Made by a program: the position numbers and the translations under genes. A stretch of DNA of 64,000 nucleotides from Adineta vaga (lineage: Eukaryota > Animalia > Rotifera): positions 11,780,001-11,844,000 of the forward strand of contig CP075496.1 of NCBI GenBank assembly GCA_021613535.1, written 5' to 3'. The notes beneath the pieces were generated by a model, which searched no databases, was not told where the DNA came from, and saw nothing but the letters and a program-made list of their open reading frames with translations. Shown here one piece after another: positions 14,119 to 54,090 of the stretch (positions are counted from its first letter, which is position 1; every line of letters begins with the position of its first letter).

Positions 14119-14672
14119 TATATCAGGACGAAAAGAACAGAAAATTATTTATGTAAGATACGAAACAATAAGCATATTTGTTTGTGCTCTTCCTACGTAC
14201 ATCATACCACCTCTCCTACTCAGAATGCCACTTATGAGAGCAAGTAAACGTACGAAGATGTGAGAGAATGAGTTATCATTACTAATGCTTATGATTCACA
14301 TCGATATTATTGTGAAAGATGCATGATATTAATAATATTCTAAGCCAATACTGGTATAATCATATGAAGTTATTCAAGAAAAAGAAATTCAAAGAATTTT
14401 TTCTATATCAAACATCACGTCATTGATGTTGAAGAGCATTGTTAGATTGAAAATATTATTTTTTCTGTTTGTGATTAATCATTGACATCCAACAATAATT
14501 CCTTTTTCTTCAAATTTAATTGTCGGTTTTTTAATCCTACACTCGATAAGTGTATTTTGATCATAATTCGAAAGAAGAAGAAAACTTCCAACATACGATC
14601 GGATGGTATAAATATAGTTGATCGTCGTCAAAAGCTAACATACAGGTGACAAAGCAGAGAAAAGGTCTTCCA

Positions 14673-16391
14673 ATGGGTTGTAAACTGAGTAAAGTTGATC
14701 AACCATCGACATTTATTGGCATCTGTGGTTCAATTGATCTTTCACCTGCAGATAATCAAGCATTCACTTTAACTGTTCGTAAACAACGACAGTCATCTAT
14801 CGATAATACTTCTTATCGTAAAGCTATCGATAAATGGCGACCATCATCGATCGAAGAATTAGTTAGATCGATTAAGAAACTCGCTCGTCGTGGCAATCAA
14901 ATCGATCGAGCTTGGATTATTTTCTATTGGATTAGTCAAAATATTTCTTATGATATAACTACTCTTAACAATCGAAATGGATCACAAAATGCCAATGCTG
15001 TATTTGAAAGTAAACGAGCAGTTTGTGAAGGTTATGCATTAATTTATGCTGATTTATGTCAACAAACAGGAATTCAATGTCGAAAAGTCAGTGGTTACTC
15101 AAAAGGATCGGGATTTGTTTTACGTCAAACGAAATTTGAGAAAACTGATCATGCGTGGAATATTATCACGCTTGACAATGGTCATTCGTATTTCATTGAG
15201 TCAACATGGGGATCAGGTCATTCTGAACAAAAAACAAATCAATTTAAAGCAGAGTTAGTTTCCCATTATTTTATGTGTCCACCAGAACATATGATTTATC
15301 AACATTTACCTGAAGATCCTAGTTGTCAATTATTAGCAAATCCAATTACGATGAATGAATTTCTTATGTTACCTCGTGTATATTCAACATTTTTTACATC
15401 AAATCTACAGATTATTTCACCTGTTGATTCGAATAGAATCGCTCTAATTGAAAACCAATCGTATGGAGAAGTACTTATTCGTACATCGAATAATAATACC
15501 ATATTATGTGGTTCATTAGTAGATGGTAAAAATATACAGATAGAAGGTGCATCTTTCTTGTATTCGGATAAGAATGATTCAACGTTGTGGCGATGTCAAT
15601 TTGCTCCACCAGAAGCAGGAAAATACACGGTTGAAATTTATGCTGGTAAAAAACAAGGAAACACACGGTCATACTCTATTGCTGTTGAATTTGTATTTGA
15701 TGTTACTTGTCGTCTTCAATCGCCAATATCATTCCCATTTACTTGGTCAGAATTTTTTGAGTATAACCTAGAAATCATTAAACCAAAAAACACCCGTTTT
15801 ATTGATTGGCCATCACATGCTAGAAATGGTTATGGTGAGATTCTAATCCGTTCACCACCAAACGTTTATCTTTCTGCACACATGGTAGATACATCTACTG
15901 ATACAGAGGTACAACACGCTACTTTAATGAGCTTTAATCACGAATTAAATCTTTGGCAATGTTTTTTTGTACCCCCTCAATATGAAACTCCATATGATAT
16001 AATATTGTTTGCCAGTTATTTAAATGAAGTCCGATCACATAGTACGGCAAAATTAAGTTTATTACCGGTAACAAAAAGTAACCTGAAACATTCGATGGTA
16101 TTTCCGGAAGTATATTACGGATTCACTGAAAATAAAGTCCAACTGATCGAACCCTTAAATGGTGTCCTTCGGAAAGGTTCTATTGTACACTTTCGCTGTC
16201 GTATACCAGGTGCTCAAGCAATTGGTATGATTGTGGATGGCAATTGGAGTACGCAGGATGAAATAAAACCAGATGAAAATGATGTTTTCGATACCAATAT
16301 CCAAGTTGGACGAAATCATGTCAGTATATGTATAAAAATGAATGTAACAGATCGTTTATTCCACAAATTTTTGAATTACACTGTGAGTTAA
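14673..16391 (+). CDS. Kyphoscoliosis-peptidase/hillarin-like transglutaminase-fold protein, intronless
   Basis: RAWIIFYWISQNISYD, AVCEGYA (Cys), DHAWN (His), FIESTWGSG and YFMCPPEHMIYQHLP, followed by repeated beta-sandwich-like segments. The likely start MGCKLSK is a myristoylation-type N-terminus. Confidence 0.85.
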   Translation: MGCKLSKVDQPSTFIGICGSIDLSPADNQAFTLTVRKQRQSSIDNTSYRKAIDKWRPSSIEELVRSIKKLARRGNQIDRAWIIFYWISQNISYDITTLNNRNGSQNANAVFESKRAVCEGYALIYADLCQQTGIQCRKVSGYSKGSGFVLRQTKFEKTDHAWNIITLDNGHSYFIESTWGSGHSEQKTNQFKAELVSHYFMCPPEHMIYQHLPEDPSCQLLANPITMNEFLMLPRVYSTFFTSNLQIISPVDSNRIALIENQSYGEVLIRTSNNNTILCGSLVDGKNIQIEGASFLYSDKNDSTLWRCQFAPPEAGKYTVEIYAGKKQGNTRSYSIAVEFVFDVTCRLQSPISFPFTWSEFFEYNLEIIKPKNTRFIDWPSHARNGYGEILIRSPPNVYLSAHMVDTSTDTEVQHATLMSFNHELNLWQCFFVPPQYETPYDIILFASYLNEVRSHSTAKLSLLPVTKSNLKHSMVFPEVYYGFTENKVQLIEPLNGVLRKGSIVHFRCRIPGAQAIGMIVDGNWSTQDEIKPDENDVFDTNIQVGRNHVSICIKMNVTDRLFHKFLNYTVS

Positions 16392-18215: not shown

Positions 18216-21200
18216 TTATTTTTTCTCATTAAAAAATGGTGGTAATAATTCGATTAGTTTTCCAACTGCTAATCTTTCTTCATCAGTTAATGATGTTGAT
18301 GAATTGCTTTGAAATTCAAATCTTAATGTTACAAAATGATAAATAATACTTGATTTTAGTTGTGCAATAATATGTGCAAATAGAAGTGACCAATTGAGAT
18401 CTATACGAGTGACTAATGTCTGCAAAGAATTGATGAATGATTAATTTCTATTTTTGACAAAAAAAGAAAACGTACGTAATCAATTTTTAATGTTGGAATG
18501 TTTGAATGAATACTACGTTTTGACATACGAAGATTTAAGTCAGTAAAAGCACGATTACTATTGTTTGAATTAATATTTAAATTTTCAGTTGATTGCATAA
18601 AATGTCGTTGATATTGAGTGTACAATTGTGAATCTGATTGAGACATATTGTAATATTCATCTACAGTTTTAACATCTAGACGTAAACGAATTCGATCAAA
18701 ATTTTCTGTAAGAATTTCACAGATACGATCCGAGTTTTTGCCATCTATGAATCATCGAATGAAAAACAATAGAAAGGAAAGATAAAAGAAGGTGTAACAA
18801 ACTTATTTGTTTGTTGTTTGATTGATTATGTGGTAAACGAAATAATGGTGATCTACAGTAAAACAATTTATTTATATAAGATAGTTATACAAGTATAGAA
18901 GAATAACTTACTTTCGATCAAGTAATAATTCAATAGTACGATAAATGTCCTTCGCATGATCTATGACAAAAAAAGTATCAAAAAACAAAGTACATGATAA
19001 GAGAACAAAACTTAAATCTTTCTAGTATTATTATTATTATTTTAACATGATATTTAGGTAAATAAACATGGTAAAACTGATAAAAATTTATCTCTATAAA
19101 CTGCGCACATCTTATGTGTCATTTCTCTCACAAGATTTTTTGTCTAAAACATGCCATTATTAAACGCTTTTATTGACTCTGTCGCTTGTGTTGGTTTTAC
19201 ATCAGAACGTGGTGTTTCACTTGATTCGGAATCGAAGAGTAATGGATCTCTTTTTACATCTTCCCTACAACCATCTGTATTGGCTATTGTTAATAACAAT
19301 CATGCTATGTATCCGCAATCACGAAGTAGTGAATTTATTGATCCATTGTATCCACCAGTAGGTCGTATAAGTTCTCATTCAATGCCAACCATCAGGTACG
19401 TCAGGGCGTTCGACACCTATATCACCAATGGGTTCAAGTACGAGAACGTCTAAGCAACAGATAATACCAACTATCTATCATAATTTACCACTTTTTTGTT
19501 TTCCTGATGGTGCTCATGCATCGTGGGAACGAGAAAATGAACGTATACATCATATTGTATTTACGCGAGAAGATGGCAAACGTACTTATGCTCTTATCTT
19601 CACATTTCAACAATCTTTTACGTTAAAAGCAGATAAACCAGATGATGATGGTATCTATCAAATTAATGATGTTCAACGACCAACAGCATATACAAGACGA
19701 ATAAGTGTGTCGAAAATACCTATTGCTATCGATAAACTTAAAACTACATCATCATTACCGACAACAACTACACCTCCGACTGTATCGCTTGCACCTTCTT
19801 CTACCCCAATAACTCCTGTAAAATCACGTTCAAGAAAAATGCCTTCATCATTTCACTTTCCTGAACAACCTTCTGGTAGTCGAGTCCGTTCATCAAGCAC
19901 TGAGAATTTAAATAAACAACCTCATTATGTAACACCAACATTTAGTAGTTATATGAAAAAGTTTGTGATCAAACTGTTTTCTTTCCGTAAGATTTTTATC
20001 TTTATATTATTCTAGTATATCGCCTTCAGCTACACCACCACCAGCACGTTTATCACGTACAAATAGTCAAACTAATTTAGCACCTTTGAATGATGATATA
20101 CCAAATGTGACCACAACTGTTTCACGACCACGGTCTAGTTCAAATGCACTTCAGAAAATACCTACGAGTACAGCACACGCAACTGTAACTAAGGCTCCAA
20201 GTTCAACACCAGTATCAACTCCCATTTCAATTCCAACTTCGAAGAAAACAGTCACTTCAATTCCAACTGTAACACCAGTCTCAACTACAACAAGACCTTC
20301 ACTTGATACAACAAAGCCATTCTATTTACCTCATTGTATTGTTCTGATCCTTCTAATCCGTATTGGACAGAAATGCAAGAAACATTAACAATTATTCATG
20401 ATGAATTGATTCAATCAAAAGTTGAACCAAGTTCAAATGCTTATAAATTTCTAATACAAAAATATGCTTTTCTCGTCTGCAATACACCAGTACCACCAAT
20501 ACCATGGGAACGGTTTTCTCTTTCATTCAGTTTAACACATAATCAATCCGTATTATTATTCGATCCACCCATTAGTACAAATCGTACAGTTATTGATCTC
20601 GATCTATCTATTATTCTTTTAACACTCAATATTGGCAAATTACTTGATGTCTTAGCAGCAATACTAACTGAACAACCAATCATTTTTTTCAGTTCAAATT
20701 ATTCGAAATTAGTAACAACACTCGAATGTCTTCTCTATTTAATCTATCCTTTGAAATGGATTCATATTTATGTTCCATTGGTACCATATGGTTTACTTGA
20801 TCATTATCTTGCAGGTCCACCAGGTGCATATATTATGGGTACACATTCACGTCATCAAGAAATTGTCGAAAAACTTGATAATAGTTTAACATGTAATTTA
20901 GATAATGATAAAAATATTCACATACCAAAGAATATTAATTTTCATAATATTCCTTTTAAAAAACTTCAACGATTTAGCGGTCCAATTACACAATTTCTTG
21001 AAGAGATTAAAAAATCTCGTTCATTACAAAATGTTCATACACCAATTCGTTTACGCGTAGATCAACAACGTGAATTTGAACGTCAACAACGTATTGAAAT
21101 TAATCAAAAAATCACAAAAATCTTTCTCGATCTAATGGTTGATCTATGTGGTGATGCATTACAACCAATCTATTGGACTGTCAATCATCAAAATAGTCCA

Positions 21201-24200
21201 ACAAATACATTAACAAGAACATCAACTAGTGAAGGAAAAACGACAAATCATTCTCAAATAGAAACATTTAGTAAAGACAAATATCTTCTTTCGAAAACTG
21301 AAGGTGATGAATTAGAATTCTATCAAGATTTTGTTGCTACAACTGCATTTCAACATCTCATGGAAGAAGAACGAATATCAACATTACCAAGTATATTTCG
21401 ACAAATTTGTCAAATACATTTATTATCAAATGAAGGTCACTTGTATGATCTTAATCATACATTAGAAAATCATACAAATAATCATGTAAATAAATTTCGA
21501 ATATTCTATCTAACTTGTTGTTATTTCTTGTCCGATATAGGATGAATCAACAACAATATTATGTGAATCGATATCTTCACAAATGATTTTACCATTACCA
21601 AATTGGCCGAGTAATGTATCTGCACATTATTTAGATAGTTGTATTGATCTATTTACTGATGAATTAAAAAATGCTGAAAAAGAACGTTCACCAGCTGTAA
21701 TTGCTGTCTATGCTTATCTTCTCGGATGTGCATTATTAGCACGTGGTAATCTTATTGATGGTTTACGTTATCTTTATTTAATTGAAAATCAAAATTTATT
21801 TCCACGAGAATTTATTGAAACAAAAATTATTCCTCGTCTTTTGGATGAACATCTCTTGGATATATTCATTCATGAACCATTTTATATGAATGCACCAGAA
21901 TGGAAGAAAGTTCAAACACGTCCTTCTCTACATTTGTCAAAAATTGATCTTGTTGAAAGTGGAAATTCATTTGATGAATCGATATCGACGAAATCATCGA
22001 ATGAATTCGATACTAATAATGATATGATTTTTATTGAAAATACTCTTACTTATGACCAATTTAGTGAACATATTCATCGTTTGAATATTGTTGTTGATAA
22101 TGAAACAACGGCAGCATTATTTAATGCTTTATTATATTGGACAGATAGTAATTTAGTAAAAACGTTGAAAAAAGATAAAACATTAACAAATAAATCATCT
22201 GATCGACGTCAATCCATATCGAACAGTACTTCATTGAAAGATACATTAACTATGTTAAATGATCATCAACGAGGAAATCAAAATATTTCTTCAATACCAA
22301 ATTTATCTGTCGAAGGAAATGCAACATTACCAACTACATTATTCGAATCATTTGTTAACATTTGGCAACAAACGAATGCTGAAAAAGTTCGTATGACTCG
22401 TTGTTTACCCGATGATCGACAAATGCAAGAATCAATTTTAAAAGTAAATCTTTTCTTCATACTCAGAAATATATTATAAGTACATTGTTTTCCTTTGTAT
22501 TCATGATTAGATTTCATCAACTGGTGTCGTATCAAAAAAAGATGGTCCTGGTCAAATAATTCTTACACAAAAACGTCTTTATTTCTTACCCGAAGCACGT
22601 TCATCAGTTCGTCTTCTAACTGAACTGATACATATTATCTCTGTAGACAAATATCAGCATCAAACGGTATTTTCTTCATCAAAACCTGGTATTAAAATTC
22701 ATACCTCTACAAATTCAAAACAAGCATCATTACCTCGTGATACAAATTCAACATTGAAATCCAAATCATTATCATTAGAAAAAGATGCCAAAACATCAAT
22801 TAGTTTATTTTTTAAAAGTAATCATGAACAAGAATTATGGTATACATTAATCATGGAATTATGGTCAGGTTTAACGATTGCACATGAACGATGTGATACA
22901 ACTCTACTGAATATAGCATCAAGACATATTGCACTTATGGATACATTAGCTAATATCGATTATGATGAAGATAATTCATCACCGTTCGATCGACAATCAA
23001 CAAGTTCACGTGCAAAATTAAAACAACGTCATAATGAGGTAAAACGATCGATTTTTCTTTTAAACTATTACGAAGATATTTATTTGAATTATAGGCAAGC
23101 CGTGAATTTGCTTTGAATGATTTATCGAAATTTACTCGAATGCTACAAGATGGTACACACAAACCATTATCAGCCGAAACTCGTAATGTTCTTACACGTC
23201 GTTTATCGCCATCGATCAATGAAACTGAACGTCGTGCTGTACGTTGTTTGGTATATGTTGAACATGCTGATAATGGTCGTTCATCGCTTTGGTGTTCATA
23301 TGGTGCTAAACTTAAAATTTTTAGTGTTTCAACATGGATTTGTGAGCCAACAAATCTCATATTTCCATCAGAGATTACATGTTTATGTCTTGATGGACGT
23401 TATAAATTATGGGTCGGTTGTATTCATGGTGAATTATTTGTTGTTGATACAATTACACGAATTTCTGGTTCACAACTAGCGTCGATTGAAGGTGAAGGTG
23501 GATGTCAAACTGCTGTATTTGATCCAGTACATAATCAAATTCTAACAGCTAATAAAACTAGTACAGTTACTCTATGGAATGCATCCAATTGGGAACGCAT
23601 AACTACTATAAATCTATGTGAAGTATATGAAACAACTCGCGATACTCAACAAAAAACATTCAAAAGCGAAGCAGTTGTTACATTTCGTAATTCTCTAGGA
23701 GGAACAACTAATGGTAAAAATCCAACACAACAACCATCTTCTATTAAATCGAATCAATCAACTGTCCTACCTGACATACCAAGTAAGACTAATTCAATGA
23801 CTTAACTATCTTTTCTTTTAATCGTTTCAATTTAGTTATTCCATCAGCTGGTGGACCAGCCCAAGTCATTCCATCATCAACAGATAAACTTGAACGTATA
23901 CAAATCTATGAAGATCTTCTATTTGCTTGTTATTGTAATGATTATATCTTAGTTTTACGTAGTACTGAGTCGAATACTTATACTTATGAACATGTCATAT
24001 CTATCAAATACAAAACAGGTGATTCAACACCAATCGAATCATTTCTTGCCTACAACAATCAATTATGGGTATCTACTGGTTGTATTATTCATATATTTGA
24101 TATTAATAATTCCAATAATGAAGATTGTTATAGTTTACGAATGAAAAAACCTGTTGATGAAGATCATTTAATTACTATGTTAGGTTTTTCTGGTTATATA

Positions 24201-33271: not shown

Positions 33272-33871
33272 ATGCACATGTACATGGGCAGAGCAATTGC
33301 TCCAATATTATCATGTAATGAAGAGAGTGCAGCATGGTTATCTCGACAAGAACGTTGGTTCGAAGAACAACCACAACTTCTTCTCGATGCTCTATCTATA
33401 CGACAAGGTATGACAATAGCTGATATTGGAGCAGGAACTGGATTTATGACAATACAATTAGCACATCGTGTTGGTCGTCGAGGATCAGTTTTTGCTTCGG
33501 ATTTACAACCTCAAATGCTTGATGTATTATCTAATCAACCAGATCTTCCTGCTAATGTAATTCCGATTCTATCAACACCTTATGATACTCGTCTACCAGT
33601 GAATACATTTGATCTAATCTTACTAGTCGATGTATATCATGAAACTCCAAGACCCGATCTTCTACTGAAAGGATTACGACGAGCTTTGAAACCTAATGGA
33701 CGATTAGCTCTTGTCGAATATCGAAAAGAAGATTCACGAATACCTATCAATTCATATCATAAAATGAGTGCTAGACAAGCCACTCTAGAACTTCAAACAA
33801 ATCGTTTTAGGTTGATACAGCGATATGAACATCTACCATGGCAACATCGACTTATTTTTATGAAACGATAA
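33272..33871 (+). CDS. Class I SAM-dependent methyltransferase of bacterial type, intronless
   Basis: YMGRAIA..AAWL.R.ER..EE.P N-terminus, SAM motif IADIGAGTG, DLQPQML, VDVYHE, LKPNGRLALVEYR and a terminal LPWQH. Confidence 0.85.
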   Translation: MHMYMGRAIAPILSCNEESAAWLSRQERWFEEQPQLLLDALSIRQGMTIADIGAGTGFMTIQLAHRVGRRGSVFASDLQPQMLDVLSNQPDLPANVIPILSTPYDTRLPVNTFDLILLVDVYHETPRPDLLLKGLRRALKPNGRLALVEYRKEDSRIPINSYHKMSARQATLELQTNRFRLIQRYEHLPWQHRLIFMKR

Positions 33872-34196: not shown

Positions 34197-35918
34197 ATGC
34201 TTTTTATATTGTTAATAACTTTAACGATTGTTTCTGCTCATCAGAACAATCCATTTATGTGTCCTGATGGTTATTCAAATTATCTTCCTGTAAAATTACC
34301 TTCAAGTTGGATAAATGGATCAGCAAATTGTTTCGAAAAAGATGCCACAAGACCAGATTTAGATATATTTGCTGTTAATAATGATACATATATTTTACGT
34401 GAAAATAAATGTATTAATTATGAAGCACCATTTATGTATTTACTTTTTGGTAATGATACTGTCCTATTAATTGATAGTGGAGCAACAGTTTCATTTGTTT
34501 CCTTACCAATTCAACAACATGTCGAAACGCTAATACTTCATTGGTGTGTTGCTCATAAAAAAGCTCGTGAAGATGTTGAATTAGTTGTTGCTCATACACA
34601 TAATCATGATGATCATACAGCTGGTGATGCACAATTTCAATATAAACTTTTCACTACTGTTGTTGGAACAAATGTAACAGAAGTAAGTCGATTTTTTCAA
34701 TTAGACGATTGGCCAAATACGATTGGTTCATATCCACTTGATAGTCAACGTCAATTAGCCATTATACCAATACCTGGTCATGAAAATGCTTCTATTGCTT
34801 TCTATGATTGTGCAACAGGTTTATTAATCACAGGCGATTCATTATTACCTGGACGTCTATACATAGGAAATTTTTCTGCTAATGTAGATTCTATTTCACG
34901 TCTAGTCAATTTTATTGAATCAAATCGTATCAATGTAACATCAATACTTGGTGCACATATTGAAATGACTCAACAAAATACAACTGATTATCCAAAAGGT
35001 GCAACATATCAACCGAAAGAACGTTTATTGAATATGTCCTTAGAACAATTACATCAATTGAATAATGAATTACAACAACAATGGAAAGATGGTTTTAATC
35101 ATCGACATAAAGTTTATTATGATACATTTATATTTGATCCTAAACCATCAGAATTACCACCATTAACACCTGGTGAACGTGTTTCAGTTCATGGTTTTAT
35201 TATATTACCATTAGATCAATTAGGTTATGTTTGGATATCACATAAACCAATGTTTCGTGCACCACATGATTTTCAACTTGCTTTTCTTGGATTAGTTACT
35301 AATTCAACAGTTAATCCATTACCATTACCAACGAATATAACTCAATTAAGTAATCAATTTACCATTGAACCATTACAACAATGGTCATTAAATGATTTAA
35401 TTAATGGTAATATAACAAACTTTCGAACGAAATTATATACAGGCAATTTCGAACAAGGTGGTCGATATTTATGTGATGTAACAATTAATATTATTCGACC
35501 ATTATTAACTGTTGTTCAATTGAATGAAACAGAAGTTGAATCTTATCAACCAGTAAGTTATTCAAGTTATCTTCTATCCAATTCGACACTTACAACAGAT
35601 AATCGTATTCATGTTTATTTACTTCATCAAATTCGTGTTCAACCTGATTTTGATTCGATTGTTCACGCTACTATTAATCCAGCTGATTGTACAACGGACA
35701 TTGATCGAAATCAATTAAGTAATTTATTACAACAAAATGGTAATCAATGGGCATTTCCTGGTATTGAAAATGATATTGGTGATCGTCTTACACGAGCATC
35801 AGGATCAGTACGTGCACAATTACTTGGTGATATTTATAATACAATATGTAAGATAAATGTTGTCGCAGAAATTCAATGCACAATTGGACCTGATTTTTAT
35901 GAAGATTGTAACGTTTAA
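34197..35918 (+). CDS. Secreted metallo-beta-lactamase-fold hydrolase with an additional C-terminal domain, intronless
   Basis: Signal peptide; LLIDSG, HTHNHDDHTAGD (HxHxDH), IPGH, ITGDSL and LGAH metal ligands. The second domain begins VHGFII..SHKPMF.APHDFQ. Confidence 0.85.
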   Translation: MLFILLITLTIVSAHQNNPFMCPDGYSNYLPVKLPSSWINGSANCFEKDATRPDLDIFAVNNDTYILRENKCINYEAPFMYLLFGNDTVLLIDSGATVSFVSLPIQQHVETLILHWCVAHKKAREDVELVVAHTHNHDDHTAGDAQFQYKLFTTVVGTNVTEVSRFFQLDDWPNTIGSYPLDSQRQLAIIPIPGHENASIAFYDCATGLLITGDSLLPGRLYIGNFSANVDSISRLVNFIESNRINVTSILGAHIEMTQQNTTDYPKGATYQPKERLLNMSLEQLHQLNNELQQQWKDGFNHRHKVYYDTFIFDPKPSELPPLTPGERVSVHGFIILPLDQLGYVWISHKPMFRAPHDFQLAFLGLVTNSTVNPLPLPTNITQLSNQFTIEPLQQWSLNDLINGNITNFRTKLYTGNFEQGGRYLCDVTINIIRPLLTVVQLNETEVESYQPVSYSSYLLSNSTLTTDNRIHVYLLHQIRVQPDFDSIVHATINPADCTTDIDRNQLSNLLQQNGNQWAFPGIENDIGDRLTRASGSVRAQLLGDIYNTICKINVVAEIQCTIGPDFYEDCNV

Positions 35919-39452: not shown

Positions 39453-41703
39453 ATGTCATCAACAGAGAAAAAACCACGTTTAGTATCAGTTAATTCGATC
39501 CTATCTGATAATGAATTGATTGAACGTTTCCGAAGAGCGTATATCAATCGAGTGTCGATAGAAGAAAAAGTTCGTGTTGAAAAACAAATTGTATTTGAAA
39601 TCGTTTTTTTTTTCGAAATGTTTTTCTTCAAGTTATAAAATTAGAACATGAACCATTTTCCTATTGTATTATCGATGATTTTCTTCAAGAGAAACAATAC
39701 AATCAATTCTCTAATCAATTAATCAATGAATTGAAAAATATCAAATTGAATCCGAAGAATAATGATTTATATAAATTTCAACAGGTTTGAATGAGACAAA
39801 GAGATTGGAAATAAGTCTTTTTTTTCTAATATAATTTAGTCGGATGATTTGGCTCATATAACATTACCAGCTATTGAACAGATCAAGTGGGTTTGTTCGA
39901 TATATGGAGTAATACTAACTTTCTCTTCAAATCCAGGCAATTTCTCTATGTTGATCTCAAAGATTGGCTTGTTCAAGCGACTGATATTCGTTTAAGTGAT
40001 AAAATTGATATGACATCATCGAAATATGAATATACAGGTATTATTATCAATTGGATTTGTTCATAGAAATGTTGATTTATTTCTTGAAGATTATCTTTTA
40101 TGTCATGACGATGATATTCATGGAACAATTGAAGGTCGTCGAATTGCTTTTATTTATTATCTTGTATCCGATGATTGGCAAGAAACTGATGGAGGAACAT
40201 TGGATCTCTTTGAAACTGATAGTAAATAGAATAAAAAGCATGAAAATTTTGTCTATATAGTTTGAATGTTTAGATGATAATCAACCATGCCGTATTGTGA
40301 CATCATTGGTACCAAAACGAAATCGATTAACTTTCTTTGAAGTTACTGATAAATCGTATCATCAGGTAGTTTGAAATTGAAAATCTAAAATAGATTTTAC
40401 TTTTCTTATTTATAGGTTGCTGAAGTTTTGAATGAAAAACAACGAGCTCGTTTATCAATCAATGGTTGGTTTCATGGTCCTGTTAATTTTCGGCCAGCAC
40501 CTGTTTTTGAATCATTACCAACAACGATACCAGCAACAAAATTTCAAACGAATGATGTAAAATTGATTTTGATTTTCTTCGAAATGATTTCAATCAAATT
40601 TATTATAGTTAGATCGTGTTAATCAAACAATTACACCAATGTATTTGAAAGTTGAAACACAATATGATGTTCAAATGGCATTTCAGGAAAATTCCGAAAC
40701 GAAATTATCAGATTTTTTCCAAGTAATTTCAAATAGATACAAGACTTTTCTATTGTTTTGTTTATCTTTTTAAGAAAGATTTTTTTCAAGCAATGGTAAA
40801 TGAATTGAAGAGTGATACGATCAAATGGATACGACGAGGTCCATATAATAAACGGTAAAGAAAAAAACCTGTTTGATCATGAAAAAACTATCATTCTATA
40901 TTCATAGAAATTATGATATCGCTGATGTTAATTCTCTGCCATCAGCATTGAAAAATCTCGTCGAATTATTTGGTTCTGAACCAATGTTTACTATTCTTGG
41001 ATCTTTAACTGGTTTAACATCAGAAAATGATGAAGATGAAGAAACAGAATCTTATGAACCATCACCTAAAAAACGAAAATCAACTTCAACAGGTAGAATA
41101 TTATTTTGAAGATCTTTTAAAACTATTTTCTTTCAATTTAGCAGAAGTTACGTCAACATCAACTGCTTGTTCGTCGTCTTCACGATGGTATTTTGAATTA
41201 CGACGATGGAAACATACGTATTATAGTTTATCATATGATACTGATAATCATACTAACAATGATGATGATGATGATGAAGATGATGAGAATGAAGAAGAAG
41301 ACAAAGATGGAACACTTGATGTCATGATTTTCTTCAATTATCAATCTGGTATTTCTTTTGTTTTTCAACAAGAATCGTTTTTTTTATAAGAAAAAAATGT
41401 TTTTTTTATTCAGATGGAAGTGAAGAAACAACTGGTGGTGGTGATGTTGTATACACAATCAAAAATGAAGATGAAACTGTAAAAATTCCATTCTTCATTG
41501 AAAACATTCATGAAACTTTTTATCTTTTATTTCATTAGTTGTTACGTGTCATTCCTGATGATAATAGTCTCAATTTGATCTATCGTGAAGATAACAAGGT
41601 GCTAAAGTTTAATAAATATGTCAATCATCGACAAGCAAATAATACATTCTATGAGTTTTGTGCATGTTATCTTGATTTAGATAAACTTAAAATTGATGAA
41701 TAA
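39453..41703 (+). CDS. OGFOD1: 2OG-Fe(II) prolyl 3-hydroxylase OGFOD1/Tpa1
   Basis: [20 protein letters not shown] (HxD), [25 protein letters not shown] and [11 protein letters not shown], plus a C-terminal second DSBH domain. Confidence 0.93.
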
Positions 41704-41784
41704 AAAAATAAAATAAAAATTGAAAACAAGAGAATAAAACCGAAAAAAAAGAAGTCTCGTCTTGTAGATTTTTTATTTAATCGA

Positions 41785-44061
41785 ATGGCAACTGGTGATA
41801 ATAGTTATTTTACTGAAGATGAAGATGATCATCATACATCATCATCATCATTAAAACGGCTGATTACAATTTCGTCTGATGATGAAGATAAAGAATTTAA
41901 TCAACAAAATGTGAAACGTCAACGTTCATCTTCACTACCGAAAACCAAACCCTTACAAATAATGAACAAACAACCAGTTATACGAAATACTCGGCAAACA
42001 TCCTTGTCAATTATACGAACCAATAGTAATGAGAGCGATAATAATGAAAGTAAATGGAACTTAAAAATGATTACGACATCATCAACATCAGATCAAAGTT
42101 CAAATAAACAACTGAAGAAGAAAACAACACAAACGGTAAATAGATTAAATTTCAAGAGCACTTTGGTTTCTATTTTGTATTTTTAGAAATTATCATCGTT
42201 TTTCAATTCGAAATCGTCTAGACCACTTGTACGAACAGTTTCGTCACCAGCTATTCATCAAGAGGAACTAGTCAATAATGTAACACGAACAGTTTCACTC
42301 GATGGATTTGATATGGATGCAAATGAAATCTTTTCTCAATGGAGTGATGAAGTGACTAATACATCAACAATTGATCAAACTTCTACTCAAACAAAAACCA
42401 CAATCAATAGTAAATCAATTTGGAAACAAATTTTTAATAAACCAGTCAAATCGAAAGTAGATGACAATGAATTAAAAGAGCAATGGTCTGAATTAGATAA
42501 AAATCAATCAACAAATCATCAACATCGATACTATGGATCGACAAGTGAAACTAAAAGAACTTGTCCATTCTATAAAAAAATACCTGGTAATCTATTTATT
42601 TTTATGTGTATAAAAATAAAACAACGTTTTTTGTACTTGATTGAGTCATATAACCTTGAATATGCATGTGATTGTATTCGAGTATATATTTAGGTACAAC
42701 ATTTTGCGTTGATGCATTTAATTTTGGTAATATCGATGGTATTCAAGCTTACTTTCTTTCACATTTTCATTCGGATCATTATGGTGGATTGAATAAAAAA
42801 TTTTCGAATATGCTCTATTCAAATCAAGTGAGAATTACTAAAATGATTTGGTCATCAAATAATTTATCTTATTTATAGATAACTTGTAATCTATGTAAAA
42901 GTCAGTTAGGTGTTCGACCGGAAAATATGACGATTCTTCCTATGGACACATTTACAAATGTTCACGGAATTGATGTTGCTCTTATCGATGCCAATCAGTA
43001 AGAATAAGACGAATTGATTGATAAGTTCATGTTATCTCGTTTGTTTTTAGTTGTCCAGGTTCAAATATGTTCTTATTTCGATTTCCAAATGGAAAATTAA
43101 TTTTACATACGGGAGATTTTCGAGCTGCATCACATCTTATGACGCATCCATTACTTCAACCAAATCAAATTGATACAGTTTACCTTGATACAACGTAAAT
43201 ATCTTCATCTAGATATTGTAGATTTTCATTCTATTTTCTTTCTATTTAGTTATTGTGATTCACATTATCGTTTTCCATCACAAGATGAAGTGATTGAGAG
43301 TGCAGTTGAATTAGTTTTAGAACAACTACAAGAAAATCCAAGAATTTTAATAGCCATTGGAGCGTATCTTGTTGGAAAAGAACGAGTATTTCATGGTAAA
43401 AATGGATTCATTTCTAATATTTCGAAACGATTTCATCATTTAGCTATTGCAAAAGCACTTGATTGCAAAATATTTGTTGAAGCACGAAAATTTCGTATAC
43501 TAAATCAATTAGATAATGACGATTTATCAAAACGTTTAACAACAAAACCTAATGAAACGAATGTTCATGTTGTTGGTATGGGTTCCGTAACATCACCGGT
43601 AAAAATTTTCCGTATTAAAACTATTGTCTTTCGAGTTTTTAAATGATCATTAAAGATGTTACAAACACATATGGATAAATATTCATTAAATTATACAAAA
43701 GTCATAGGAATAAAACCAACTGGTTGGACAACTCCTCGGGCAACAGGTGGATCAAAACATTATTCTATTGAATCTAAATCATCAAATATTACTGTTTATG
43801 GTTCTGTATTCCTTTTATTTAATATTAAGTTATATTTCTTCTTATCTTTTTTAGGTTTTCCTTATAGTGAACATAGTTCTTTTAATGAATTAAAAACTTT
43901 TATCGAATATCTTAAACCCAAACGAATTATTCCAACGTAAGCAAAATCAAATTATCCTTCTTCTTTGAATAATTTATTCTCTATTCCATAGTGTCAATGT
44001 TGGTCGTGCAAATGTACGTGAAAAAATGAATGGTTATTTCAAGCAATGGTTATCAGTTTAA
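41785..44061 (+). CDS. DCLRE1A: DNA cross-link repair 1A (SNM1A/Pso2; MBL-beta-CASP nuclease)
   Basis: [60 protein letters not shown] and PYSEHSSF. Confidence 0.93.
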
Positions 44062-46287: not shown

Positions 46288-48487
46288 AATTGTTATTATG
46301 AAAAATCAAGAAGAACTTTCAGTTGTTTTGTTTCTATATTAAATAACACATTAACTTGTGAATAAGAAAGAAAAAAAGATTGACTCTTATTTCCGATTTT
46401 TCAACTAAGAATACATCCTCTTACTAGCAACTCACACTTTAAAATTTGCATTTCTCTCTCTCTCTCTTCTATATAAATGCACTAAAATTTTCTATATAAT
46501 AAGCATCTATACAAGTAAGTGTCAACTAGAATAAAAGAAAAAAGCATTCTAAAGAAGAAAACTAGGTAACTAATTTGAAAAAAACTATTCAACTAATGAT
46601 CAGATAGCATGATTTCCATAGAAATGAAAAGTCAATGTCCTAACACTGACTTGACTATTTGGTTACCAGGAAATAAATAAAAGGAACTTGTCGAAAGAAC
46701 ATAAAGAATGAAATTATTGACCTTTATTCTTAAAATATCAGAAAAAGAGAGGAGTATAGAAGTTCAATTCTATAGATAGTTGTTTTTATTGATTATACCG
46801 AGTTGCTCAGTCATATTTCAATGTGATATCGAACAAAGGAAAGAAACAATTGATTTCCCCAATGATATTGATACTTATTCTTACTGATTGCCTTTATCAA
46901 ATATAAATGACAAATATGTTCGTAATAAACTCAATTCTGATTGAACAGATCAACTGTTTTTTGAAAAAATTTAGATTACAGGCTCGTAAATAGAACATTA
47001 TCATCTGAACATTTGGAAAATGTTTGAATATTTATTTGAAAAAGAAATTATCGATATGTGAATGATTGGGATAGTATATAGAAATGAACAAGTTCAGGCA
47101 TCTTGATAGAGAACAATTAATGAAATAATCTCTATGAATATGTATGATGAAAAAAGTCGGTTGGACAATTTGAAGCATAAACATGAGCAGAATAAGAGAT
47201 TGGAAAATCTTATCGGGGTATTAAAGAAAAAGCTGTTAAGAGTTCCATATACCACAGAGGGCGGGAAAGAAATGTGGATGGGTATGTGCTTTATGCTTAT
47301 ATGAATTGTACGATCCGCTCAAAAAATCTTCTGTTGTTTCTCTTCCTTTGATGTTAACTGCTATTTTATGTAACTTCTTATTTTCCTTTGTAATAGGAGG
47401 TTAGACAAATAGACTCTTTATGATCGATACGTTCAAATATTATATAGTTCGTTAATAAAAAACAAAGAATCATTGATACAGACATCTTCGAAATATTGGT
47501 TCATGATTTGTATGACAACTATGTTCATATACGCAGCGGGATACACAGGAAGAAAAATGATCTATGATAGACATAATCTAAACATAGGAAGAGATGATAA
47601 ATGATACTGAATTAGCTGCATCGATTTCGAAAAAGAATTCCTGGTAATTAGAAAATGCCGGTGAAATATAATTATAAACAATCTTTGATAGTTAAAAGAA
47701 AAGAAAGAAAGAAATGGTGTTTCATATCAATCAGATAGGGTTCGTTAATGATGGTCAATCATCATCATCATCAGTCGACTGCAAACAAGCGTGGTTTACA
47801 GGCGATAACGATGGTCAATAAGAAAGGTTAAATCAATGATTATAATGAAGGTCTTTCGTTGTCTGATTGAATCATTGAAAATTTAGAGAAATTAAAAAAA
47901 TGGGCAATTTAGCAAGATTTTCTTCCCATGACAATTTTTCGTTCAGTTTAAAACTATACGATCAATTTAGAATATATATCTTCAGTTTTCCATAAATAAA
48001 ATTGTTTTTCTAATTAAGTATTCATTTATGCAGTGTAAGAAACTGAAAGTAGATTAATATTCAATTAGTACAGTCATTCATTTATCTGAACTAAACTTCA
48101 TCAACCATTGAATCTGATGATAGTTGATGTTTACATATTCTCCTTACCAGCTCGAATACGTGACATGCTCACATCGTTTTTCTTTCCTTTCTCTCTGTCC
48201 ATTCTCTCGTTATAGTACAACTGGAAGAATCGTCGTGCACATTGCTTGTATATATTTTTCATTTCTCTTTTCTTTATTTCGTTGTTTCAATTGTTGTATG
48301 TGCTAAACGTCTTCGCGTCCATCATTAGAATTCATTCAGGCAAGTATATTTTCGAGGATACTATATACGAAGTTCTCAAACTATATGATTTCTAAAAAAT
48401 CTGTTTAGATACAATCAGCAAGATTGTTATTCATTTATTAGTACTTGTCTTTGATTAATATCTATTGATTGTACAGTATTTTTCAGT

Positions 48488-50852
48488 ATGAAAAAGTCAA
48501 ATAAGAAAATTGAAGTTATCGATTTAACCAAAGATGAAAATGATGAAGAAAAATGTGCAACGAATCAACAGTGTAACGGCCCAACATGTCGATATACATG
48601 TAGAATTGTAATTGAAAATGCGGTTAGTTGATTCTATTCCTTTATTATTATGATATCTATACATATTTACACGAAGTTAAAAGTCGTTGAGTTCGACTAA
48701 TCGGAATGTTCAAAAAAGTTGAACCGTTAATATCGAGGGACACAGAATACACGAACCAACATGATAAATAAATATATTTCATGATTAGTTACTACATGAA
48801 ACTATAAGAAATATAAGGAAAGAAGAAAAACACGTGGTAGATATCGGAGATTTTTACTTGTATATATGTGATTGATTGATATTTATCCAAGATTTTCTCT
48901 GCTATTTGAAATATAACGAATGTATTTTCTCGTAGGTTTCATCAGCAACTGTTCAACAACCAATTCGTCCGCCAAATGTTCATCGTGAATCGTCATTATC
49001 GAATAGTGATAGTTTTCAAAAGAAAAAACTAAAAGTAATTGTATATATTTAATACGATGCGCTTAGTAGCGTATTTTTGAATTTCTTCGCGTTTATTTAT
49101 TTATTTTTTTTCAACAGACCATTTGACCATCGTAGTTTTTGATATGATGATGTAGAGAACATAGAGTGTCGATTGACTGTCCGAGTAAATAACATTTTTT
49201 CGATAAATTGAGGCAATTTTTTCTTATATGATAGAGATAATTAAAACGAAAGTAGGCGCAAAAAAGCAATTACTAAATCTCTAACGATTAGCTGAAAAAA
49301 TAATTAATTGATGCAGCGACACTATTTATTTCGTCGAAATTTAAAAGTATTCGCAGAAGTTCCTAAAGCTTCACGCTCCGTATTTCGCAATTCAAGCTAA
49401 ACTCGAATGTCTCTCTACTTCTTTCTCTACATATGATCGAAATAAACTATTGATATTACTGAAGAAATCTTTTTGAATATGATTTTGAATCTATTTGTTT
49501 TTCTTTTAGTCATTTACTAACAAATATGTCGTTCTTGATTCTCTCGAAGGTTTAAGAAGTTTACCAGACAATTCCGTTCAATGTGTTGTTACATCTCCAC
49601 CATACAATAAACTTGGTCTTCGTGAAGGTCGTCCATATCTTGGTCAAATTATTTATGATACATACGATGATAATATGAATGAAGATGACTATCAAAAATG
49701 GCAATTACAAATTCTCAATGAAATTAATCGTATTCTTAAACCTGGTGGTTCAGCATTTTACAATCATAAAGATCGACGTTTTTGTAAACGAGATCATCCA
49801 CCAGAAAAATTTCTGTCTGACAGTGATTTAGAACTATATCAGACAATCATATGGGATCGCGGTTCGACAGTCAATCAAAATGCCCGTTATTTTCGTCCAT
49901 ATGTCGAAAAAATCTTTTGGTTTACAAAATCTATATCAGGCGAATCAACAACACCAAAATTTCATCGTGATCGTTTACCAGAATATTTTAAAGGTGTAAT
50001 TTGGAGAATTCCTCCAGATAAACGGAATAAACATCCAGCACCATTTCCAGCAATTCTAGCAGAAATTTGTATTCTAACCACAACAGAGGAAGGTAGAGTA
50101 TCTTGATTTATGGTAATTTTTCTACGAACTCTAATCTATGAATTGTTTCAGGTGATTTGGTTTTAGATCCATTTGCTGGTTCAGGAACAACCTTAGTCGC
50201 AGCAGCTAGTTTGAAACGGTCATATCTTGGTTTTGATATTAGCAGTAAATATCAAAAAATGTTTCATCAAAGATTGGCTACATCGAAGTCAAAAGTACAT
50301 TTGTGGGAAGAAATGTATACTGTTGAAAATATAGTAGATCATCGAGTTCGAAATGGACGTATGGAATATCTTCTTAAATGGAAAGGATATGATGCAAAAC
50401 AAAATACGGTAGGAACGATGAACTTTTACGAAGGAATAAGTTCAATTTGTGATTTTTTTAATTAAGTGGGAATATGAAGAGAATTTGAATTGTCCAAATT
50501 TACTTGAAGAATTCAAAGCATCATTAAAAAAACGAACGAAACAAAAACGAAGTTCATTCAAAAAGAAACCAGTGATTTTCGTTTCTTCAGATCAAGTGAG
50601 TCGCTTAGATTTTTTAACACACAAATCTTGATCGAATGTTCTATTCATACTATTTTTATTTAGTCACGAGATCGTAAGAGAACAATTTCATCCATCGATT
50701 CTACAGAAACTGAAGAAACTGATGAAAATTCAACAAAACGACATTGCCAAAGTGCGCCTATTTTTCGGCAAAGAGCAGTCTTATGTGAATCATTAAATTG
50801 TGACAATAACCATGTTATTTATGGTGGTTATCGATTACGTCTCAGACAATAA
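48488..50852 (+). CDS. N4CMT: N4-cytosine DNA methyltransferase (beta-class N6_N4_MTase) fused to a chromodomain
   Basis: Exons 48488-48622, 48936-49034, 49510-50092, 50152-50408, 50467-50595 and 50664-50852 give an open frame of about 463 aa. Motifs: [63 protein letters not shown]. Chromodomain [47 protein letters not shown]. The first two exons are less certain. Confidence 0.93.
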
Positions 50853-51559
50853 AAATCTCCGTTTGTTTTAGTCAATCTCATTGATATGAGAAGCATTTGT
50901 TTTTGATCTTTTCATGTTGTGTGCATCATTTTTTTCCTTTCGTTGTTCAGATATCAACGTTTTTTTTGCTTTAACTAGAAACTTTCATTGAAATAGAACA
51001 TACGTTTCCATGCTCGACACTTATCAGTTTTATCATCTACTATGCATTATCTTTTTGGGTTATTGAGTTCAAACAGTAAATCTCTTGATTGAATATTTTC
51101 AAAAAGATTTCCACAGACATTTGAATCCATGCAAATCTGTAATACAATGAAGAATATTCGTGAACATTTGCTTTGGATCGACTAGGGAAAAAGAAGATTA
51201 TCGATCTTATTCGCGAGGCAAAATTGTCGCCAGAATACAGTTGTCAATCAGAGAAAAAAATTTATAAATACAATAAGATAATATTATACCTATTGGTTCA
51301 TACAAACCAATTTCTACTCTGCTATACTTATTACATTTTGAATATGTCGATAACAGAAATGAAGAGGCTTGTTTCTGTTTGTCGAATCAATTTTTTTAAC
51401 TCGTTCTTTTGCTTTTTTTCTACGTTACTACTTTATAGACGCAGTCACCTTTTTCTTTCAGCTTGCACATTATCTTTCCTCTCGTATTACGCACATCAAT
51501 TAATTTTTACATTTTTTTTGAAAGAAAGAAAAAAGGGCAATTTCATATTGTTATATCAA

Positions 51560-52468
51560 ATGGCAACTACACCAGTAACGAGCCCGGCGACACATGGCTT
51601 TTTTGAACCTGCACAATACGAACGTTGCATTAATCGCTATGAATTCGGTAGTGATTTACTTGGTCATTTATCAACAATGTTCGAAGAACGATCGAATTTA
51701 GAACATAGTTATGTCAATGCTCTTCGTTCCTGGTCAAGAAAATGGCATGGTGAATTAACAAAATTAAATGAATATCCATCTAATAAACGAGTTTGGGATC
51801 AAATTGTTTCTACGGGTGAACAAATGGCCGATATCCATCAGACAATTGCATCGAATTTACATGATAATATTCAACCGAAATTAAAACAATGGAGAAAAGA
51901 TAATTATGAAAAATCAATTATAAATTATAAGAAATCGAAAGAATTCGAAAAAGAATTTGAAAACGTACAGAAACCATGGAATAAATTACTTGAATCAATT
52001 TATGAAGCCAAACAAAATTATCATAAATTAATGAAAATATCAAAGCAATGTGAACACCAAAAATTATCAATGCCAATTGAAACACCGAGTGAAACTCAAA
52101 AACAAATTGTTGATCATTATATTCAAGTGAGTCTCGACGTTGATACAGCCCGAACAAGATATCAACAATTATTACGTGATGTAGCACCGAATGCTGAACC
52201 AAGACAACGTTACGAAGCAAATATGATTGAAGTCTTTCAACATACACAAGCATTTGAAAGTAAACGTCTCGATTTTGTCAAAGATATCTTTACAGATTAT
52301 ATCAAAACTTTACAACAACAAGCTGTTGCTAATAAAATGCTTGATGATTATGTACGAGTTTTACAAACACATAATACTCCAGGTGATCTGGAAATTTGGT
52401 ACAAGAATCATGGGCCAGGTACACAATCACATTATCCAGTTTTTGAAGAATATCAAGATACTTTATGA
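51560..52468 (+). CDS. PACSIN/syndapin-like F-BAR protein lacking the SH3 domain, intronless
   Basis: GFFEPAQYERCINR, FEERSNLEHSY, FENVQKPW, FESKRLDFVK and WYKNHGPG..YPVFEEY, followed almost immediately by the stop. Confidence 0.8.
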   Translation: MATTPVTSPATHGFFEPAQYERCINRYEFGSDLLGHLSTMFEERSNLEHSYVNALRSWSRKWHGELTKLNEYPSNKRVWDQIVSTGEQMADIHQTIASNLHDNIQPKLKQWRKDNYEKSIINYKKSKEFEKEFENVQKPWNKLLESIYEAKQNYHKLMKISKQCEHQKLSMPIETPSETQKQIVDHYIQVSLDVDTARTRYQQLLRDVAPNAEPRQRYEANMIEVFQHTQAFESKRLDFVKDIFTDYIKTLQQQAVANKMLDDYVRVLQTHNTPGDLEIWYKNHGPGTQSHYPVFEEYQDTL

Positions 52469-52670: not shown

Positions 52671-54090
52671 CTATTGTAGAGATGTTCGCGTTGTTAATGA
52701 TGATGACCGTCCAAGTTCACTTGTGCCTGATGTAGCTGTTTGTGAACTTGAATATGTTGCTAATACAATAAAATCTCTAGCCGTTCTTGGCGGAGTAGTT
52801 AAATGTGAAGAATTTGAAACTAACATTGCTGATCGATTATTGTTTGTTCCATCACATTGCTCTCGTCGTTGTTCAAGTCGTCGTCGATTAATCAATGGTG
52901 AATTATTTGTGTAAACACTCACGCGTATATCTATACTCTCATTATTATGATTATTTAATTGATTTGATGATTTATATCGAGAACATGCTAATAATTTCAA
53001 AAATTCTCGTCGAAAATCTTGTCCACTTAATGTATATAAGATAAAATTCAATGCATGTTTCGTATACCATAATGATTCAAGTAAATCTATTACAAGCAAT
53101 TTCGTATTTGAAACTGTTCTTGATGATTTTAAACGATTTATACATATATAAATCACAGATGGACATGTTAATAACATAAATGCTAACGTAACAGATAGTA
53201 GCATGATTGTTAAACGATTATTTCGTTGTTGCTTTTTTGATGTTGTAAATAACATATTCGAACGCATTGTCGTACGAATAATTCCAATATTGGTAAATAT
53301 CATTAAACAAAATGGAATGATAGCAACAAATAATAAATCAAAGAAAGGTACATATAGACGAAAAAATCCGTCATATCTTGGTTGAGCCATACAAACAAAA
53401 TGAAGTGTATAATTGAAAGTTTCAGTTACATTTTCATGATCAAATTGATCAACTGGTATTCGTAATGGTATATTTGTTCCTATTGAAATAGAAGTTAAAA
53501 AAATATCTATGAAAAAGAATTAAACATGTTTTCCTTACCTACGATATGAAAATAATGTAAATTAGCTATACATACAATAAGAATAAGTATACATGAAGAT
53601 TTTCTTACACGTAAACTAGCATGACGACTTACAAAGAGATGTTTAATAATAAAATATCGATCGAAACTAACAATAACTAATATCCAAGATGCTAAATGCG
53701 AAAGTGTTGAAGAAAAAAATGTAAATGATCGACAAATCCATAAGGACGTATTTCGTACATCGACATTATATACATAACGATAAACATAACGTGTCGATCT
53801 CAAATAAATGAAGAGAATATCAATAACAGCTAGTATACATAAATATTGACATGTTGATTGACGACGAAAACGTTTTCGTAAAAGAATTTTCAAACATAAA
53901 ATATTGCCAATTGTACCAAATATCATTAAACATGGATAAAAGATTCGAAGAAGACCATAACGAATAAAAGGATGCCACATAATTTCATCAATAGAAGTGT
54001 TTAACAAAATATTTCTATATTCTACGACGCATATCTGTTAAGAGAGTAATAAACAAAAGGAAAAGAAACTTGTCGTAATTTATTAATCAT
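52671..54090 (-). CDS. Rhodopsin-class (peptide-receptor-like) GPCR
   Basis: GTIGN (TM1), LAVID (TM2), VSFDRY (TM3), IIPF (TM5), LTCP (TM6) and ALNFILY..FRREF (TM7/H8). Start exon MINKLRQ is inferred. Confidence 0.88.

Follow-up and report, generated by a model that had tools for sequence, protein, structure and literature searches.

What is a DNA methyltransferase of bacterial type doing in an animal chromosome, split by introns and followed by a chromodomain? The question is raised by a gene at 48488-50852 of a 64,000-nucleotide stretch of DNA from Adineta vaga, a bdelloid rotifer (positions 11780001-11844000 of chromosome-scale contig 4; the whole stretch is called the window here, and its first letter is position 1). 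A first-pass annotation, made from the letters alone, had described the gene as such a fusion, linked it to the architecture reported from bdelloids under the name N4CMT, and judged it probably not undescribed. We conclude, with a probability of about 0.97, that the gene is allele A of A. vaga N4CMT, a bacterial- or phage-type DNA cytosine-N4 methyltransferase (MTase) of the SPPY beta class joined to an HP1-type chromodomain. The gene is thus already known and not new; the earlier reading is supported, and nothing in our analysis contradicts the identification.

N4CMT, found in 2022 and crystallised in 2023, is the first animal writer of N4-methylcytosine (4mC), an enzyme that came from bacteria by horizontal transfer and has been tied into the silencing of chromatin. 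That it can be recovered exactly from raw sequence alone is one outcome of this work. Another is a base-accurate, transcript-verified gene model on a chromosome-level assembly, including a GC-AG intron in the 5' untranslated region (UTR) with two acceptors. The sole new lead, and a testable one, is a sequence in exon 1 that resembles a SUMO-interacting motif (SIM).

The gene is N4CMT of Adineta vaga

The identification rests on residue-for-residue agreement with a crystallised protein. The translation of exon 3 is identical at 194 of 194 residues to the "DNA cytosine-N4 methyltransferase" of PDB entries 8S9M, 8S9N and 8S9O (E ~1e-136), and the first 51 residues of exon 4 are identical to the same chains up to W324, after which the construct tag begins. 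The earlier naming of N4CMT is borne out by 100% identity over 245 residues. In our exon model, residue 79 (the start of exon 3) and W324 are also the bounds of the crystallised fragment N4CMT79-324, which comes from the "A" form of the A. vaga enzyme (PMC10406627). Compared with N4CMT allele A (UJR33503.1; GSADVT00006927001; the three PDB entries), the window gene has the same residues 79-324, the same numbering, five coding introns and a C-terminal HP1-type chromodomain, and no difference was seen over the compared residues 79-324.

Which allele is it? N4CMT gave a single match in the 100.8-Mb, six-contig A. vaga assembly. No second copy or paralogue was found there, in keeping with an assembly that is haploid-collapsed, and only the public DNA run X11 showed the second allele, as Y209N, S221A, I260L, V397A and I434L. 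The published allozymes differ by three substitutions within the methylase domain and by another three in the C-terminal part (PMC8885841). The X11 variants fit these differences. The window carries allele A.

Between positions 48505 and 50843, the window and the public-run contigs differ in coding sequence at K6N, V10I, R35Q, V338I, V397A, I434L and L461R, to which the DNA run adds Y209N, S221A and I260L. These look like differences of the second allele, of strains, or of both, and the contigs may mix alleles.

Gene model and transcripts

The coding sequence begins with the ATG at 48488 and ends with a TAA stop at 50852, on the + strand, in six coding exons. Joined by script, these give 1392 nucleotides, or 463 codons and a stop, without an internal stop. 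The five coding introns, at 48623-48935, 49035-49509, 50093-50151, 50409-50466 and 50596-50663, measure 313, 475, 59, 58 and 68 nucleotides; all are GT..AG, in phases 0, 0, 1, 0 and 0. Similarity and Pfam searches were run on single-exon translations, and exons were joined only for reading codons, motifs and variants. The features of the locus are as follows.

48303..48339, + strand: 5' UTR exon; transcript contig X15 begins at 48303, the furthest upstream transcript point, and is joined onward from 48339
48340..48486, + strand: 5' UTR intron; GC donor GCAAGT and two alternative AG acceptors, so that the intron ends at 48408 or 48486
48488..48622, + strand: coding exon 1, residues 1-45, part of the eukaryote-specific N-terminal extension; donor GTTAGT; joint seen in three runs
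48509-48550, + strand: SIM-like motif IEVIDLT plus KDENDEE, in exon 1, residues 8-21
48936..49034, + strand: coding exon 2, residues 46-78, linker; its 3' end encodes the basic patch KKKLK (49020-49034)
49510..50092, + strand: coding exon 3, residues 79-272 and one further base; catalytic part of the beta-class N6_N4_Mtase domain
49594-49605, + strand: motif IV, SPPY, in exon 3, residues 107-110
50152..50408, + strand: coding exon 4, residues 273-358; last part of the MTase domain, followed by the chromodomain's first half
50166-50189, + strand: motif I, DPFAGSGT, which binds S-adenosylmethionine (SAM), in exon 4, residues 278-285
50316-50318, 50379-50381 and 50388-50390, + strand: cage residues Y328, W349 and Y352, in exon 4
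50467..50595, + strand: coding exon 5, residues 359-401; second half of the chromodomain, then a basic stretch
50664..50852, + strand: coding exon 6, residues 402-463 and TAA; a poorly conserved tail rich in Ser, Thr and acidic residues and containing Cys

Transcript contigs from three studies, X1 (1441 nucleotides), X14 (1353 nucleotides) and X15 (1651 nucleotides), each span all six exons and remove exactly the five coding introns. Because single contigs cover all six exons, methylase and chromodomain lie on one mRNA. The exon joins for which RNA confirmation had been proposed are thereby settled, the one between MTase and chromodomain included. A contig from the DNA run X11 (48300-50432) is continuous through introns 1-4 and into intron 5, with no joints anywhere in it. 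The public-run evidence consists of assembled contigs rather than reads, and so speaks to presence and structure, not to expression level, ends or strand. The exon model has strong support of another kind as well, since two Pfam profiles resume seamlessly across two of the introns. Chance could not come near to producing such a gene.

Upstream of the start codon, the UTR joints fall at 48334>48482 in X1 and X14 and at 48337>48407 in X15. Shifted by the 5- and 2-base ambiguity at their edges, both become GC..AG, with a shared non-canonical donor in the context cag/GCAAGT at 48339/48340. The acceptor at 48408 was used in run X15, and that at 48486, one base before the start codon, in X1 and X14. 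At the other end of the gene, an AATAAA at 50848 overlaps the stop codon, and transcript contigs extend to at least 50996.

Two basic segments, the KKKLK patch before the methylase core and the stretch after the chromodomain, are, we infer, plausible candidates for nuclear localisation signals. KKKLKS is the consensus in the alignment of bdelloid orthologues.

A permuted MTase domain and an HP1-type chromodomain

Of the profile of the Pfam family N6_N4_Mtase (PF01555), positions 1-180 are found in exon 3 (E 1.1e-20) and positions 183-219 in exon 4 (E 2e-12), and no match to the MT-A70 or MTS families was found in the Pfam scan of the N4CMT exons. SPPY, starting at residue 107, precedes DPFAGSGT, starting at residue 278, which is the permuted order of the beta class. 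The first-pass annotation had called a complete amino-MTase with this permutation, and the positions it gave for the two motifs (49594-49605 and 50166-50189) are exact to the base.

The Pfam Chromo family (PF00385) matches exon 4 over profile positions 1-32 (E 3e-10) and exon 5 over positions 33-52, the latter with E 0.11 when taken alone; the exon 5 sequence is the usual continuation of an HP1 chromodomain. A search for both the N6_N4_Mtase and the Chromo profile, proposed earlier as a check, thus found the two of them. Among proteins of solved structure, the best relatives of the C-terminal part of exon 4 were human CBX5, Drosophila HP1 and CBX1, followed by CBX7, CBX4, CBX8 and CDY. Y328, W349 and Y352, the three residues proposed earlier as a Y/W/Y aromatic cage, align opposite Y, W and F of human CBX5, which we take to be the cage residues of HP1. 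On this alignment the predicted aromatic cage of the HP1-type chromodomain is intact.

What N4CMT is known to do

The enzyme has been described in full in two papers. The first (PMC8885841, Nat Commun 2022) reported an allelic pair, five conserved introns, the beta-class permutation, SPPY and the HP1-type chromodomain. It detected 4mC in rotifer DNA by dot blot, DNA immunoprecipitation sequencing (DIP-seq) and single-molecule real-time sequencing (SMRT-seq), enriched at transposons and tandem repeats and overlapping H3K9me3 and H3K27me3. Recombinant N4CMT deposited 4mC in Escherichia coli and in vitro, a SPPY-to-APPA mutation abolished the activity, and SETDB1 paralogues preferred 4mC DNA (PMC8885841). 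The second paper (PMC10406627, JBC 2023) added kinetics, a preference for (a/c)CG(t/c/a) and crystal structures. For the 4mC activity, its targets and its genomic distribution we rely on these papers; our own observations concern the gene structure, the single spliced mRNA, the domains, the identity to the crystallised enzyme, the single copy, the animal neighbourhood and the bdelloid-only clade. The checks that the first-pass annotation had proposed are likewise in print, namely a profile search, a tree with REBASE enzymes, cDNA, the mutation of SPPY to APPA, blots with anti-4mC and SMRT mapping; the exception is a histone-peptide pull-down.

Taken together, the following course of events is proposed. 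A bdelloid ancestor would have captured the gene, which would then have gained introns and eukaryote-specific N- and C-terminal extensions and become fused to an HP1-type chromodomain. The MTase core (residues 79-324) binds SAM and methylates the exocyclic N4 of cytosine, with a preference for CpG within (a/c)CG(t/c/a), as the literature has shown. The chromodomain (residues ~326-378, with the cage Y328/W349/Y352) may dock the enzyme on H3K9me3 and H3K27me3 nucleosomes, and such docking would lead to 4mC being written at silenced transposons and tandem repeats.

Bdelloid orthologues and the nearest relatives outside bdelloids

An exhaustive, profile-free search with exon 3 returned 1640 cluster representatives at E <=0.001. 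The top three matches (60-70% identity) are bdelloid fragments, and the remainder are mostly proteins of 240-290 residues at 35-50% identity. Among the 150 best representatives, 131 carry SPPY and one has a chromodomain signature: the top match, P0001, which is 66% identical to exon 3. When P0001 was used as the seed, full-length proteins in which PF01555 and PF00385 occur together were recovered from Adineta ricciae, from A. steineri and from five species of Rotaria (R. sordida, R. socialis, R. magnacalcarata, Rotaria sp. Silwood1 and Rotaria sp. Silwood2). Some of these orthologues bear the UniRef name cytosine-N4-specific methyltransferase. When 63 sequences were placed in a quick maximum-likelihood tree, the 12 from bdelloids grouped together, with a Shimodaira-Hasegawa-like approximate likelihood ratio (SH-aLRT) support of 100, nested among short methylases that have no chromodomain. 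Support in this tree is by SH-aLRT only, the root is the midpoint, and the outgroups are metagenomic, with no named REBASE or PDB enzymes among them; for these reasons we claim no donor.

Two of the closest non-bdelloid SPPY methylases, P0181 and P0176, are ~50% identical to P0001. They lie on the JGI contigs Ga0451520_0000243 (105.7 kb) and Ga0509788_08731 (240.6 kb), amid many small genes without Pfam families, and Pfam recognised no nuclease neighbour around the methylases on either contig. Every called gene on Ga0451520_0000243 points in the same direction. Both contigs have the look of a large phage or of some other mobile genome. A further SPPY methylase, P0004 (425 residues, from a Logan assembly), is 40% identical to exon 3 and has a C-terminal extension of ~190 residues rich in Asn and Lys, and no chromodomain; its composition suggests an AT-rich genome.

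Genomic setting

GC content is flat across the window, at 0.26-0.34, and that of N4CMT (~0.31) is the same as in its flanks. The animal-type neighbourhood that had been proposed for the gene is made up of F-BAR, G-protein-coupled receptor (GPCR), DENND3-like and KY-like genes on its two sides. The Pfam-supported features of the window outside N4CMT are these (ORF, open reading frame).

14646-16391, + strand: KY-like transglutaminase
19428-23805, + strand: DENND3-like gene, in pieces
33272-33871, + strand: class I SAM methyltransferase ORF (Methyltransf_11/25, E 2.4e-13)
34197-35918, + strand: metallo-beta-lactamase-fold ORF, intron-free, 573 residues
44133-44696, + strand: AAA_33/shikimate-kinase-like P-loop kinase exon, 188 residues, ~3.8 kb upstream of N4CMT
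51173-52468, + strand: FCH/F-BAR gene
52671-54007, - strand: rhodopsin-type GPCR, two exons

Pfam recognised no nuclease family among ORFs of at least 110 residues at 36-64 kb and of at least 150 residues elsewhere in the window, smaller or spliced ORFs not having been scanned exhaustively. Over the ORFs scanned, this agrees with the earlier remark that no restriction nuclease lies nearby. The ORFs at 41027-43646, on the same strand and before the 188-residue kinase ORF, gave no Pfam match. The methyltransferase ORF at 33272-33871 adjoins the 573-residue metallo-beta-lactamase-fold ORF. Long unbroken ORFs that belong to enzyme families are, in the genome of a bdelloid, candidate foreign genes beyond N4CMT.

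Alternative explanations

Could the methylase be bacterial or phage contamination, or a recent, unexpressed insertion, mis-assembled into an animal contig? Its closest non-bdelloid relatives would fit such an origin, being methylases of 240-260 residues, 45-51% identical, on phage-like metagenomic contigs. The gene itself does not. Its five GT-AG spliceosomal introns and its UTR intron are all spliced out in transcripts of three studies, one intron interrupting the methylase domain and another the chromodomain; its GC content is that of its flanks, animal genes lie on both sides, and the fusion recurs in orthologues from two genera of bdelloids. The spliced transcripts already refute this explanation, and with the introns, the uniform GC and the animal neighbours we reject it as vanishingly improbable. 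A different objection concerns chemistry: the enzyme might really be an N6-adenine DNA MTase or an RNA MTase, the 4mC assignment being wrong. The N6_N4_Mtase domain has switched repeatedly between N6-methyladenine (6mA) and 4mC specificity, according to the original N4CMT authors (PMC8885841), so that domain content alone is not decisive. Against this stand the motif, which is SPPY rather than DPPY, NPPY or DPPW and is shared by most of the closest relatives, and the lack of MT-A70 and MTS matches. In addition, work published on this exact catalytic domain reports an anti-4mC signal, sensitivity to McrBC, activity that disappears in the APPA mutant, and kinetics with CpG substrates (PMC8885841, PMC10406627). 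We regard an adenine or RNA specificity as very unlikely.

The reading of the window gene as a horizontally acquired, chromatin-targeted N4CMT has three limits. Identity past residue 324 rests on the exon model and the transcripts, as the comparison with published sequence covered residues 79-324. The quick midpoint-rooted tree shows bdelloid monophyly and points to no donor. Binding of the chromodomain to methylated H3 is presumed here and, going by its main text, also in PMC8885841, where it is "expected" and is supported by overlap of chromatin immunoprecipitation sequencing (ChIP-seq) with DIP-seq, with no peptide-binding assay in that text. We nevertheless retain N4CMT allele A as the identity of the gene.

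A possible SIM in exon 1

Is the chromodomain the only part of N4CMT that could bring it to chromatin? Targeting in vivo may not be solely, or even mainly, the work of the chromodomain if a SIM in exon 1 recruits the enzyme to SUMOylated heterochromatin factors, a proposal we consider possible rather than probable. Exon 1 encodes a PIAS-like motif, IEVIDLT, followed by the acidic run KDENDEE (residues 8-21); this is the pattern of a type b SIM, in which two hydrophobic residues precede D-L-T and an acidic flank is present. Its core, VIDLT, is the SIM of PIAS1, which is inactivated by a VIDLT-to-AADLT mutation, and it is shared by VDVIDLTIESS, the PIAS2 peptide used to map SUMO2 binding. We compared the motif among eight full-length bdelloid sequences, window exon 1 and seven orthologues. 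Four of the eight keep it: A. vaga (IEVIDLT), A. steineri (IEIIDLT), Rotaria sp. Silwood1 (IEFIDLT) and R. sordida (VEIIDLS). A. ricciae has part of it (TIDLT) at the same place in the alignment, and the residues around the motif are poorly conserved among bdelloids. R. socialis and R. magnacalcarata (AESINST, AELINPS) and one further orthologue have degenerate forms. These forms, and the fact that the motif is a short linear one, count against the proposal. By chance, ~0.0014 matches to [VI][VI]DLT would be expected in a protein of such size and composition, and the pattern occurs in 0 of 248 non-bdelloid homologues. The V10I variant seen in transcripts retains the hydrophobic core of the motif.

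Neither of the two papers on N4CMT uses the word "SUMO" in its main text (PMC8885841, PMC10406627). The 2022 recombinant constructs were made without the first exon, which their authors call variable (PMC8885841), a description that itself speaks against a functional element there; the full-length protein of 2023 was poorly soluble (PMC10406627).

Structure prediction lends the idea weak support. A complex of exon 1 with A. ricciae SUMO (P0288) scored 0.37, against 0.01 for the best of three controls; runs agreed in at least 84% of contacts, and the partner had a predicted local distance difference test (pLDDT) value of ~50. Of 78 solved complexes, 51 reached the mark set for these scores, as did 2 of 108 mismatched pairs. 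Those that reached it with 0.60 or below include only 5 of the 78 solved complexes and all 4 passing mismatches. A score of 0.37 falls in a range where predictions are wrong more often than right, unless the guess had good odds to begin with. Moreover, SIM-SUMO complexes have already been solved, and the pass may reflect memory of that likeness. The partner came from A. ricciae rather than A. vaga because introns interrupt the SUMO genes of A. vaga; P0288 is nearly identical to A. vaga SUMO over the exons seen.

That exon 1 holds a functional SIM is thus a tentative suggestion from motif and model, with the odds somewhat against it. With the same reserve we offer the wider proposal that N4CMT may possess a second, undescribed chromatin-targeting module, an ancestral bdelloid SIM (VIDLT and an acidic run) in its N-terminal exon. 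If true, the SIM would couple the writing of 4mC to a SUMO-dependent assembly of heterochromatin, of the SETDB1/MCAF1/PIAS type, beside the reading of H3K9 and H3K27 methylation. Targeting through exon 1 could also join the replication-coupled action suggested by the CcrM-like dimer described below.

Several observations on A. vaga SUMO and its relatives were made along the way. The SUMO genes lie in at least three short exons (contig 3:8004700-8005700 and contig 6:2804000-2804900); in the gene on contig 6 the first intron keeps the frame and contains no stop, so that an 86-residue ORF reads through it. C-terminal SUMO exons were matched at four places in the genome (C3:8005307, C3:12329391, C6:8409259 and C6:2804560). 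A Rad60-SLD search of the assembly returned mostly ubiquitin repeats and divergent ubiquitin-like ORFs. Contigs 3 and 5 hold several single-exon ORFs of the latter kind, of ~75-95 residues, with an MKV/MRV..TLDD..I..EVEPSD N terminus and no C-terminal GG, and these match Rad60-SLD at 28-42 bits.

Comparison with known systems

N4CMT, as we identify the window gene, can be set beside the Type II beta-class N4-cytosine MTases of prokaryotic restriction-modification systems and phages (PF01555). It shares with them the permuted order of the motifs, SPPY, FxGxG and a core of ~245 residues, and identity to the nearest relatives is 45-51%. Unlike them, it carries spliceosomal introns, extensions at both termini, a chromodomain and a place on an animal chromosome, and no nuclease partner was seen in the ORFs scanned. 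Where a restriction-modification gene would be an intronless prokaryotic or phage gene with an adjacent endonuclease, this one has five introns and animal-type neighbours. We conclude that N4CMT descends from the prokaryotic N4-cytosine MTase family and is not part of a restriction-modification system.

In its logic, N4CMT resembles the plant chromomethylases CMT3 and ZMET2, which likewise combine an H3K9me-reading chromodomain with a DNA cytosine MTase ("histone-read, DNA-write"), an analogy drawn by the original authors (PMC8885841). The proteins are nonetheless unrelated: CMT3 and ZMET2 are C5-MTases whose chromodomain lies inside the catalytic domain, whereas N4CMT is an N4 amino-MTase with a C-terminal chromodomain. 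The closest structural relative of its catalytic domain is CcrM of Caulobacter, a dimeric beta-class N6-adenine MTase (PMC10406627). CcrM has DPPY and makes 6mA at GANTC, whereas N4CMT has SPPY and makes 4mC at CpG. With PIAS1 and PIAS2, finally, exon 1 of N4CMT shares an identical VIDLT core followed by an acidic run. The motif alone is held in common, the proteins not being homologous, and in N4CMT the binding of SUMO is putative.

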